In this document: one piece after another, positions 21,810 through 51,882 of the stretch
Numbering within the stretch: position 1 is the first letter of the stretch
How the letters are laid out: every line of letters begins with the position of its first letter
Assembly (NCBI RefSeq): GCF_011386835.1
Contig: NC_088793.1
Span: 169,322,001-169,386,000 of the forward strand
Length of the DNA: 64,000 bases
Direction: 5' to 3'
Origin: Chrysemys picta bellii
Taxonomy: Eukaryota
Position numbers and translations under genes: made by a program
The notes under the pieces: generated by a model
Seen by the model: only the letters and a program-made list of their open reading frames with translations
Databases searched by the model: none
What the model was told of the DNA's origin: nothing

Positions 21810-23322
21810 TCAGACCTCAGTGGTTCAGGAGCCAAATTAGCTATCAGCATTACCTAAAAGAGCCACAGTAGTGTGAATTCATTGTTTCATTTACTATAGT
21901 ACTATATATTCATATTTAAACAGTATGACAGGGGAAATGTTATATATTATTTTTACAGCAAAATGACTGACCAAGTATTATTTTATCAACTACAGTTGGT
22001 TTATAACATAGTAAAAGCATCCTGATTGGTTAATATTTAAGGCAAACAGTATTTTAATATCATGTGCTGCAAAGAGCTGCAGGAGACACATTAAAGAACC
22101 ACTTGCAATTCAAGAATCTCAGGCTGAGTATCACTGTATTACAGCCTAGAAGAACCATATTAAAATAGAGCTCTTCTCCCTCCACCCCTCTAAATGGTGG
22201 CCAAAAGAACAGTTAAACAGAACTGTGATGCTCTCAGTTTCTGAGGAGGAAAGCCTAGATCATGTGACTTATGTGCATCCTCTAGTGGCTGACAACAGAA
22301 TGGCTAAAAAGAAAAACAACAGTGTAATGAGAAGGCTGTTCCAGTCATCGTATCTATTAGCACAGAGTGAGTGTCTTTAAAAAAATATTAAGTGTAAAAT
22401 ATAATAACAAAACCACTCAGACCAGAAGCCTACATCTGAACAGTCTGGCATTGTACGGGAAGACTGAAGTCATTCTGTTTCCATTTGAAAGCACGGGAAA
22501 TCAGAGATGATCTCAAGTTGTGAGGGAGCGTTACATTAGTAATTTTAATGACTGCTAAATTATCCCAAGCTTTTTTAAAAACTAGGATGTTCCTTACAAA
22601 CTTCAATTACCATTGTTTGGAAAGGGGGAGATAGATTCTCTCAGTCCAGCTCTCCATCATGGCTCAGCAGTACACTGCAATATTGTTACAACGGCAGCCC
22701 CCCTCTGACAAAGACAACAGTCCCATTCCCTAAATACATGCGGCATGTATAACTGCTAGGAACTAGTAATTAGAATTTCCCTTTAACAGCAGATCTGGTT
22801 GTTTGCATTGCCACTCACCAGCTTTCTCTTGCTTCACAGAGCGGGTGCTTCAGAGCATCGGGGGGAGGAAGGAACGAAGTTACAAGCAAAAAGAAAAGCA
22901 GGTCATTGATAAAGTGGAGGGGAAAGGCTGTTTCTTGGGCCTGGTCTACACTACGGGTGTAGGTCGACTTTAGCAGCGTTAAACCGAATTAAGCCTGGAC
23001 ACGTCCACACAACGAGGCCCTTTCTTTCGACTTAAAGGGCCCTTTAAACCGGTTTCTTTACACCACCTCCGACGAGGGGATTAGCGATAAAACTGGCCTT
23101 TGCGGGTCGGAATTGGGGTAGTGTGGACGGAATTCGATGTTATTGGCCTCCGGGAGCTATCCCACAGTGCTTCATTGTGACCGCTCTGGACAGCGCTCTC
23201 AACTCAGATGCACTGACCAGGTAGACAGGAAAAGACCCGCGAAGGTTTGAATTTCATTTCCTGTTTGCCCAGCGTGGAGAGCACAGGTGACCACGCAGAG
23301 CTCATCAGCACAGGTAACCGTC

Positions 23323-23863
23323 ATGGAGTCCTCCCAGGATCGCAAAAGAGCTCCAGCATGGACCGAACGGGAGGTACGAGATCTGCTCGCCATATGGGGA
23401 GATGAAGCAGTGATAGCTGAACTCCGTAGCAGTAAAAGAAATGGAAAAGTATTAGAAAAGATCTCCAAGGCCATGAAGGACCGAGGCCATAACAGGGACA
23501 CACAGCAGTGCCGCGTGAAAATTAAGGAGCTATGGCAAGCCTACCACAAAGCCAGAGAAGCAAACGGAAGGTCCGGGGCAGAGCCGCAAACTTGCCGCTA
23601 CTACGCGGAGCTGCATGCGATCCTAGGGGGTGCAGCCACCACTACCCCAACCGTGTGCTATGACTCTCTCACTGGAGAAACACACAGGGAAGACGGTTCG
23701 GGGAACGAGGAAGATGACGATGGAGGTACTGTAGGTAGCTCACAGCAGCAAGGAAGCGGAGAAACCGTTTTCCCCAACAGCCAGGATATGTTTGTGACCC
23801 TGGACCTGGAACCAGTAACCCCCGAACTCACCCAAGACCCTCAGGGCACACAGGAGACCTCTG
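23323..23863 (+). CDS. Harbinger Myb/SANT-like DNA-binding protein, copy 1, exon 1
   Basis: ATG in GTCATGG. RKRAPAWTEREVRDLLAIWG..RDTQQCRVKIKEL..Y..A Myb/trihelix domain. Donor CTCTG|GTGAGT. Carries an R>W change (KELWQ) relative to copies 2 and 3. Confidence 0.85.
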
Positions 23864-24405
23864 GTGAGTGTAACTTTGTAAATATTTGTAAACATTACAA
23901 AAAAAAAGCAAGCAAGTCTGTTAACGTGTATGGGGATGGAGCGGAAATCCTCCAGGGACATCTCCAGAAAGCTCTCCTGGTTGAAATGGGGTGATTTTAT
24001 TAAGGGGGACATTCAGAGGCGCCCGTTCCTGCTATTCTGACCAGAAATGTTCCCCGCTGTTAACCACGCGGTGGGGGGGAGGGGTGAAGTGATCATCCCA
24101 GAGAATCGTGTGTGTGTGTGTGTGTGGGGGGGGCTTTACTTGTGTTTGTGCCGCATGTTAACCGGGAAACCGCAGCCCCTCCTTTTACATTGAAACCCCA
24201 TTTTAAATGGACAACCCAATTCATCCTTGATATGGGAAATGCGCTGCTGTTTGCAACCTTTCCCGCATGCTAAGAAGGTTAAAATAGCCAAAAGGCCTAC
24301 GATGGCTGCCTGCAAGCCGAAATATGCGACCTTGTAATGAAAGAGTGTACCCATTGTTCCCTAAAATGTGTCTTTTTTAACCACCTCTCCCTTCTCCTCC
24401 ACCAG

Positions 24406-48730: not shown

Positions 48731-49278
48731 CTGGTGGAGGAGAAGGGAGAGGTGGTTAAAAAAGACACATTTTAGGGAACAATGGGTACACTCTTTCATT
48801 ACAAGGTCGCATATTTCGGCTTGCAGGCAGCCATCGTAGGCCACAGTGTTTTGGCTTTTTTAACCTTCTTAACATGCGGGAAAGGTTGCAAACAGCAGCG
48901 CATTTCCCATATCAAGGATGAATTGGGTTGTCCATTTAAAATGGGGTTTCAATGTAAAAGGAGGGGGCTGCGGTTTCCCGGTTAACATGCGGCACAAACA
49001 CAAGTAAACCACCCCCCCCCCCCCCCACACACACGATTCTCTGGGATGATCACTTCACCCCTCCCCCCCACCGCGTGGTTAACAGCGGGGAACATTTCTG
49101 GTCAGAATAGCAGGAACGGGCGCCTCTGAATGTCCCCCTTAATAAAATCACCCCATTTCAACCAGGAGAGCTTTCTGGAGATGTCCCTGGAGGATTTCCG
49201 CTCCATCCCCATACACGTTAACAGACTTGCTTGCTTTTTTTTTGTAATGTTTACAAATATTTACAAAGTTACACTCAC

Positions 49279-49819
49279 CAGAGGTCTCCTGTGTGCCCTG
49301 AGGGTCTTGGGTGAGTTCGGGGGTTACTGGTTCCAGGTCCAGGGTCACAAACATATCCTGGCTGTTGGGGAAACCGGTTTCTCCGCTTCCTTGCTGCTGT
49401 GAGCTACCTACAGTACCTCCATCGTCATCTTCCTCGTTCCCCGAACCGTCTTCCCTGTGTGTTTCTCCAGTGAGAGAGTCATAGCACACGGTTGGGGTAG
49501 TGGTGGCTGCACCCCCTAGGATCGCATGCAGCTCCGCGTAGTAGCGGCAAGTTTGCGGCTCTGCCCCGGACCTTCCGTTTGCTTCTCTGGCTTTGTGGTA
49601 GGCTTGCCGTAGCTCCTTAATTTTCACACGGCACTGCTGTGTGTCCCTGTTATGGCCTCGGTCCTTCATGGCCTTGGAGATCTTTTCTAATACTTTTCCA
49701 TTTCTTTTACTGCTACGGAGTTCAGCTATCACTGCTTCATCTCCCCATATGGCGAGCAGATCTCGTACTTCCCGTTCGGTCCATGCTGGAGCTCTTTTGC
49801 GATCCTGGGAGGACTCCAT
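49279..49819 (-). CDS. Harbinger Myb/SANT-like protein, copy 3, exon 1
   Basis: ATG at 49819. Intact Myb/trihelix domain (KELRQAY). Donor CTCTG|GTGAG. Confidence 0.87.
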
Positions 49820-51882
49820 GACGGTTACTTGTGCTGATGAGCTCTGCGTGGTCACCTGTGCTCTCCACGCTGGGCAAACAGGAAATGAAATTCAAACCTT
49901 CGCGGGTCTTTTCCTGTCTACCTGGTCAGTGCATCTGAGTTGAGAGCGCTGTCCAGAGCGGTCACAATGAAGCACTGTGGGATAGCTCCCGGAGGCCAAT
50001 AACATCGAATTCCGTCCACACTACCCCAATTCCGACCCGCAAAGGCCGGTTTTATCGCTAATCCCCTCGTCGGAGGTGGTGTAAAGAAACCGGTTTAAAG
50101 GGCCCTTTAAGTCGAAAGAAAGGGCCTCGTTGTGTGGACGTGTCCAGGCTTAATTCGGTTTAACGCTGCTAAAGTCGACCTAAACCCGTAGTGTAGACCA
50201 GGCCTAAGTAAATGGGGGGCGGGGGGAGGGGAACAGCACTTATAGTAAAGAGCAAATGTGATTCTTTACAAGTAGAGCTTGTTATAAGATGTCACATCTT
50301 AAATTGTGTAGTCTTAGAATGTCCTTTACAGTAGATACAGACCCCTAAGAACTATTTTCTTTGAACATATTTATTAGACTGCCAAAAGTTTCCACATCAG
50401 CAGAAAATTAGACAAAATAAGGACTGAGTTAAATACAGTTGCTAAAGTACATTCATGGTATTATACTTGAAACTGTAAGCCAGAAGATGTAAGTTAGTAC
50501 AAGTAAACAAAACTGCAAAGTTGTGAAAATACCCTCTTTCATTTACAATTTGGGTTTGGGGGTAACAACTTTATTCTGGAAAGGAAACAGTGAATTGGTG
50601 AGACTATATTTGTTCTTGAAAAACAGTCAAGAGTACCTTCAACTAGATACTGCTTTACAGTGATTATGAATGTGTTTGATGTTTTAAAACATTGCACTTC
50701 AGCCCAGAGAGCATAGGGTTTTTTTCCCCAGTAGGCAAGGCAGTGTTTATATTTATCTACACTAATATTTTAGATTAGAGATTTTACAATGGAATGACTT
50801 TTGAACAAGGCAGTTCTGTTTCAAATTTCCACACCCTTATACCATCTGTCCTACTTGTAAACACAATGAGCACTTTCAAGGGAAGTTCCTGTATAGTTTT
50901 TAAAAAAACTAAACTAAAGGACAAAGGCTTGCAGACTATTCCATGTTGTTTTCTAATGTAAGTACATAATGCTACACCACGTGGAGTGCTTTCTGAAGGG
51001 CTACTGCCACATCTTCACCAAAATAGACTTTGGTAAATACCTTCTCTTTTGTATAGGCAACTTGCATAAGCTATCAGTACAGACAATAGATTAAGAGTGT
51101 GTAGTTAAAATTCTTTGTTTGGGGGGGGGGGGGGGAGAGGAGAGGAAGCTCTCTAAACCAATCTCCTCCCCAAACATTTCACATCAATTCAACCCCTTTA
51201 GGCAACTAAATATAGCCTCCCATCAGGAAAAGAGGGAGGTTCTTACATTGGTGGCCAACATATTGTAAAAGCCTAGGGAGGACAAGGCAATTTGTAGTTT
51301 TCACCCATGTTAGCAGACCAAAGTAAATCCTAGGCCTGGTATATGCTGAAAATTTAGGCTGATTTAACTACATAGCTTAGGGGTGTGAATCTACATCTCT
51401 CAGGAGTGTGAATTTAAATCAACCTAAACCCCAGTGTAGACAGCACTAGGTCAACGGAAAAATTCCACCTTTCTAAAAAACTTTTACCACATTACCTACC
51501 ATGAAGAACACACACTAGTGAAGACAGGGTTGTAGATTGTAATATGCTATAGAACTCAGGAGTCTGAGCATTAGATTTCCTGGTCCACTGAAATGTACAT
51601 TACCACAAGACAATTCAGATTTTATCTAGTTGAACAACAAGCAGGCAGCAGCATACCTTTATTTAGAGGCTCATTGCCAGTGAGCAGGGAAACAGTGTAC
51701 AAATCACAGAAGCCAGCCCTAAAGAGTTGTCACCGGGATACTGCAGTGGTTACCAGCCTCTAGCATAGCACATCAATTTATAGCAGTTTAGAACAAGTAG
51801 TTTAATCCCACATTATAATTCAGCATTTAAAGACCCACAAACTGCTATTGATTAAGTTGTTTTAGAATGAATCAAAGTTAGT

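Follow-up and report, generated by a model that had tools for sequence, protein, structure and literature searches.

Why do three full-length, two-gene Harbinger transposons lie within a single 27-kb interval of a turtle genome? The interval belongs to a stretch of 64,000 nt from Chrysemys picta bellii (RefSeq assembly GCF_011386835.1, contig NC_088793.1, forward-strand positions 169,322,001 to 169,386,000); this whole stretch is called the window, and all positions given below are positions in it. Self-comparison of its 20–53 kb part by repeat search and blastn, with the ends read from the element termini, places three copies (designated c1, c2 and c3) between the gene that we take to be PRPH2 and TBCC, and reproduces the three lengths (Table 1) reported in an initial annotation made from the sequence alone. 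We think it likely that the copies are three separate insertions of an abundant and already catalogued family of the NuwaII type, that c1 is a recent one and that the cluster was built up over time.

The evidence that c1 is recent comes from other animals. Contigs of four public sequencing runs were placed on positions 22731-28608: three DNA runs (X8, a different sample and study under the species label of the window, and X3 and X4, under two other turtle labels) and one RNA run (X16). In each of X8, X3 and X4 a single contig of 1.5–1.9 kb joins position 22937 to position 28410 with no letters between them. These contigs skip 5472 bp, that is, c1 plus 3 bp, and keep a single TTG; in all three runs they account for the entire depth on either flank. 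With no more than 3 bp in common, the flanks could not have been connected by a 31-mer graph, so that the empty allele is real. Run X4 equals the reference at the nearby variant positions 22817 and 22842, yet its site is empty, and the c1 insertion is therefore younger than that standing variation. Thus, c1 is a recent, unfixed insertion. Since its site is empty in three other samples, the family moved recently, as the initial annotation had supposed in calling the copies young.

The homology between the copies ends at the inverted repeats, and both the flanks and the target duplications differ from copy to copy. Since the flanks differ and the similarity stops at the element ends, we are dealing with insertions and not with a duplicated segment; read in this way, the three copies would be separate and independent insertions.

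Copies c1 and c3 are near-identical, as had been noted (99.2% identity, with 42 substitutions and 10 indels); the identity of c2 to either is 96.0–96.3%. When the 42 substitutions are polarised by c2, 16 are private to c1, 24 are private to c3 and two are ambiguous; they are evenly spread along the element, with no long identical or conversion tract. Given so many private substitutions on both sides, neither c1 nor c3 can have been copied recently from the other, and the idea of a parent and its daughter has to be given up for this pair, though the c1 insertion is recent. With the human substitution rate as generally given, the c1/c3 split would be roughly several million years old if the turtle rate is about one-third of it, the proportion given for turtles in PMC4054807.

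In a maximum-likelihood tree of 20 proteins, c1 and c3 come out as sisters (support 91/86), P0001 is next and c2 stands outside, so that c3 is indeed the closest relative of c1 among the few copies sampled. The transposase protein of c1 is identical to the inferred ancestor of c1 and c3 (tree branch length 0), and that of c3 has 6–7 private residue changes, mostly CpG transitions. Relative to c2, c1 and c3 have two intron deletions in common (∼204 bp in total). They also have in common six letters that are seldom seen in the X8 and X4 family pools: 0–7% at positions 23016, 23195, 24360, 26258 and 27052, and 7–17% at position 27496, with c2 carrying the majority letter at each of them. Position 26258 encodes Ala54, a residue present in 0 of about 25 related RefSeq proteins. 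By these letters we assign c2 to the majority subfamily, and c1 and c3 to a minority Ala54 lineage. With c2 in the other subfamily, no fewer than two lineages and three distinct events went into the cluster.

In run X3, the letters of the c1/c3 lineage make up 22–96% of the family pool, versus 0–17% in X8 and X4. The flanks of X3 also differ most from the window (seven listed differences, versus three in X8 and two in X4), and the letter counts suggest that the c1/c3 lineage expanded in the turtle of run X3.

Each element is bounded by inverted ends of 18 bp, both starting with GG and matching at 14 of 18 positions, with a common 12-mer core (in c2 the left end is flipped). This 12-mer has six exact occurrences in the window, versus 0.15 expected for a scan with one mismatch allowed. 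The 3-bp target duplications are TTA for c3, TTG for c1 and TAG, seen at the right end only, for c2; all three fit the pattern (C/T)N(A/G) published for the 15 NuwaII families of C. picta bellii (Han et al. 2015, PMC4482050). The TTT on the right of c1 is odd for an unfixed young insertion, given that the left copy and the empty sites of three runs have TTG. The flipped 54 bp of c2 are bracketed by two inverted copies of a 7-bp stretch, and the inversion looks like fold-back repair at a cut end. A 13-bp motif, AGCTATCCCACAG, occurs one time close to the left end of c1 (23155-23167) and two times close to its right end (28209-28232), pointing inward in all cases; these motifs are candidate binding sites of the Myb-like protein. 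In the region upstream of the c1 transposase, contigs of three other genomes skip 961, 804 or 1041 bp, and judging from these contigs family members vary in the number of internal repeat units there.

Every copy carries a 433-codon DDE_Tnp_4 frame and a convergent Myb_DNA-bind_4 gene. All three copies match the DDE_Tnp_4 profile (PF13359) over positions 1–158 of 158 (E about 1e-36), and residues D216, D266 and E340 are invariant among the transposase relatives; a search for solved structures related to the transposase found none. Exon 1 of the c1 Myb gene matches Myb_DNA-bind_4 (PF13837) with E=6.5e-18. The GT and AG of the Myb intron are kept in all three copies, with …ETS joined to AANV… at the junction as in the RefSeq models P0135–P0137. 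The two Myb exons were compared separately. The initial annotation had credited each copy with a transposase plus a spliced Myb partner and had considered the machinery apparently complete. The gene pair is present in each copy, but both genes are in the usual frame in c3 only: c1 combines an open transposase with a shifted Myb tail, and c2 is broken and dead. At 24828, the site of the 13-bp deletion in c1, there are contig pieces with loose ends. The ratio of nonsynonymous to synonymous substitution rates (dN/dS) between copies is about 1–2, as would be expected of neutrally decaying copies. The transposase genes of c1 and c3, as well as the Myb gene of c3, are open in their natural form and are candidates for activity.

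Antisense open frames run through the Myb intron of c1 and c2; they gave no Pfam match, no similarity to solved structures and no homologue in a word search. The deletions of c1 and c3 fall in the intron stretch that carries these frames. As the two genes are convergent, an exon in the Myb intron could not join the transposase start.

Three ways of arriving at this arrangement have to be weighed. A family with thousands of copies and a preference for gene-rich DNA could put three unlinked copies within 27 kb by chance or regional preference, an explanation that we rate at somewhat under an even chance. The family is numerous: upwards of 20,000 contig pieces with a likeness of 95% or more fall on the element in each DNA run, versus one contig on the flanks, and the element-to-flank depth ratio is 15,000–21,000, a depth that is no copy number and shows only that the family is high-copy. 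Each of the 15 NuwaII families of Han et al. has 265–434 matches, counts that look limited from above (PMC4482050). Uniform placement gives ∼2 triples per genome at 3,000 copies and ∼60 at 10,000, but at 1,000 full-length copies or below the expectation falls to about 0.06 such triples in 27 kb per genome. The membership of c2 in another subfamily and the position of c3, ∼1.7 kb from the TBCC coding end, agree with regional preference. On the other hand, among ∼195 entries published for the best-matching family only ∼5 contigs carry two separate pieces, in a list whose contigs break inside repeats and which offers no firm test of clustering (PMC4482050), and the sister relation of c1 and c3 is not expected under independence.

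That sister relation mildly supports linked reinsertion, in which an Ala54-lineage donor residing in the interval or close by would have seeded the c1 and c3 sites by short-range hops. The two sisters lie only 16 kb apart, and the letters that they share, rare in X8 and X4, speak for a common source together with the two intron deletions. Yet the same letters are frequent in the X3 pool, so that the lineage can be abundant; the comparison took in some 10 young reference copies, all of them RefSeq protein models; the window shows no donor; and the private substitutions of c1 and c3 are at odds with the near-identity expected of a donor and its new copy. Local hopping is therefore a possibility that we regard as rather unlikely. 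The near-identity and inverted orientation of c1 and c3 might also be laid to a segmental or assembly duplication, or to gene conversion, which we consider very improbable in view of the points already given: homology goes no further than the inverted repeats, neither the flanks nor the target duplications agree, the substitutions leave no long identical tract, and c1 has an empty site of its own. Segmental duplication and gene conversion were both rejected on the unlike flanks and the evenly spread substitutions. Pending a genome-wide copy map, the cluster itself tells little.

On the reading that we prefer, three separate insertions of the NuwaII-type family, each copy would have arrived by cut-and-paste transposition, in which the DDE transposase cuts at the inverted ends, the Myb/SANT partner is required and 3 bp of the target are duplicated; this mechanism is established for the PIF/Harbinger superfamily and would extend to the present copies. 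Copy c2, which is dead, would have come from the majority subfamily. Copy c3 was probably inserted earlier and decayed in place, mostly at CpG sites. The sequence lineage of c1 presumably stayed functional elsewhere and landed at the present site recently, with its private changes most likely acquired before the landing. The cluster would then have accumulated over time, and not by one local burst.

Several observations weigh against this reading. The presence and zygosity of c1 in the reference animal rest on the assembly. Contigs prove presence and not absence, and X8 may be heterozygous. On its right side, c1 has TTT and not TTG as target duplication. Insertion polymorphism across individuals, which had been proposed as a check, was found as an exact empty site in three runs for c1, the one site covered. 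The family was assigned by features (433-amino-acid transposase, 18-bp ends) and not by sequence. Finally, pieces of the family are present in the RNA run, where DNA carry-over is possible and the spliced joint is not among the joints listed.

A bolder proposal can be made only tentatively: that the Ala54 lineage is autonomous and still transposing in living painted turtles, c1 being a segregating insertion that has an ancestral-type transposase and was reinserted near its sister c3. If true, the Ala54 lineage would be a two-protein DNA transposon that is naturally active in an amniote. Few DNA transposons are mobile in nature among amniotes, and c1, with its open transposase, shows recent movement of a Harbinger element in painted turtles. 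Its exact empty site is the sole new addition made here, the locus being otherwise a cluster of a known family; c1 may serve as a presence/absence marker for painted turtles.

Table 1. Positions of the three Harbinger copies, their genes and ends, and the right-hand neighbour gene, in window coordinates
Feature	Position	Strand	Remarks
Copy 1 (c1)	22938-28406	+	5469 bp
c1 left target-site duplication, TTG	22935-22937	.	Right copy 28407-28409 is TTT, one mismatch
c1 left terminal inverted repeat	22938-22955	+	Partner 28389-28406; 14/18 match, 12-mer core
c1 Myb/SANT exon 1	23323-23863	+	Myb_DNA-bind_4; GT donor directly after 23863; 97–98% identical to RefSeq models
c1 Myb intron, GT..AG	23864-24405	+	Holds a variable GT microsatellite
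c1 Myb exon 2	24406-24947	+	Frame end shifted by private 13-bp deletion at 24828
c1 transposase	25117-26418	-	433 amino acids, open; DDE_Tnp_4 E=1.8e-36, full profile
c1 region upstream of transposase	26450-28190	.	Internal repeats of ∼140–300 bp; one unit absent from other family members
Copy 2 (c2)	about 30911-36674	+	About 5765 bp; assigned to majority subfamily; dead
c2 left terminal 54 bp, inverted in place	30911-30964	.	Terminal GG lost
c2 Myb gene	31301-33052	+	Exon 1 31301-31838, exon 2 from 32589; tail frameshifted, stop 33050-33052
c2 transposase frame	33356-34657	-	433 codons, single stop at codon 100 (34358-34360)
Copy 3 (c3)	44716-50204	-	5489 bp
c3 target duplication, TTA/TTA	50205-50207 and 44713-44715		Perfect
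c3 transposase	46699-48000	+	433 amino acids, open; 7 residues differ from c1
c3 Myb gene	48261-49819	-	Exon 1 49819-49279, exon 2 48730-48261; usual C-terminal tail
TBCC	51955-53076	-	Right-hand neighbour gene

On the left, the interval is bounded by a tetraspanin first exon on the minus strand (14812-15396), presumably that of PRPH2 by its N-terminus. The three copies make up 61% of the span from the start of c1 to the end of c3 but 46% of the PRPH2–TBCC interval (15396-51952), and the 61% that had been ascribed to the latter is correct for the former. The observed/expected CpG ratio is 0.64 in c1, 0.62 in c2 and 0.63 in c3, as against 0.07–0.38 in the flanks, so that the copies are far richer in CpG than their surroundings, as had been stated. 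This richness, which had been taken as a sign of youth, cannot date the copies, because the dead and 4%-diverged c2 is as CpG-rich as c1.

Copies c1 and c3 form an inverted pair, 5.5 kb long, 99.2% identical and 16 kb apart, which is a possible substrate for inversion of the intervening 16 kb. Other mobile elements are also present in the interval. A Penelope-like element at 40855-42606 has a 394-amino-acid frame with reverse-transcriptase and GIY-YIG matches, and lies between two 272-bp arms, 99% identical and in inverted orientation. Between PRPH2 and c1, a minus-strand frame of 385 amino acids (18825-19982) has a reverse-transcriptase domain and resembles a long interspersed nuclear element. 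A lone Harbinger-like inverted-repeat end with one mismatch in the 12-mer core lies at 42972-42983, perhaps as the terminus of a short non-autonomous relative.

The family is widespread: its transposase has 1337 strong relatives across turtles, and at least seven other open 433-amino-acid transposases are found on other C. picta chromosomes. All features of the NuwaII group of PIF/Harbinger (PHIS) elements are present, namely DDE_Tnp_4, a Myb gene, inverted ends that start with GG and, at 18 bp, fall within the 13–46 bp of the group, and a 3-bp duplication. By its published features, the family matches the catalogued NuwaII-15_CPB (Repbase Harbinger-2D_CPB), for which a 433-amino-acid transposase, 18-bp ends and a 353-amino-acid Myb protein are given (PMC4482050).

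The family is thus already known, and an intact vertebrate Harbinger system, which the initial annotation had set against the domesticated relics of mammals, is not new, given the turtle families (PMC4482050) and the expansions in sea kraits (PMC8437027), newt (PMC5741667) and coelacanth. Nearest to the present copies are NuwaII-15_CPB / NuwaII-2_CPB (Harbinger-2D_CPB; PMC4482050), which come from the same species and have a 433-amino-acid DDE_Tnp_4 transposase, a Myb_DNA-bind_4 protein of ∼353 amino acids, 18-bp GG ends and a 3-bp duplication, whereas their consensus is 5036 bp long, compared with 5469–5765 bp here; extra internal repeat units are a likely explanation of the greater length. 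Zebrafish Harbinger3_DR likewise duplicates 3 bp and needs both a transposase and a Myb-like partner for transposition (PMC2836001 for the two-protein requirement). However, this fish element was reconstructed in active form from its consensus (Sinzelle 2008, cited in PMC5741667), while the turtle copies are natural and one of them is unfixed. Recent amplification of Harbinger elements in tetrapods or animals close to them is likewise known from sea kraits (Harbinger-Snek, PMC8437027), Pleurodeles newts (PMC5741667) and the coelacanth, but those are cases of horizontal transfer or of genome-scale bursts; what is shown here is a resident family of many subfamilies in which one copy is polymorphic. 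The mammalian relics HARBI1 and NAIF1 are homologous DDE_Tnp_4 and Myb-like proteins, and many turtle copies are named ‘nuclease HARBI1’ in databases. Unlike HARBI1 and NAIF1, the turtle copies have inverted ends, target duplications, a high copy number and dN/dS near 1 or above, and they are therefore transposons and not host genes.

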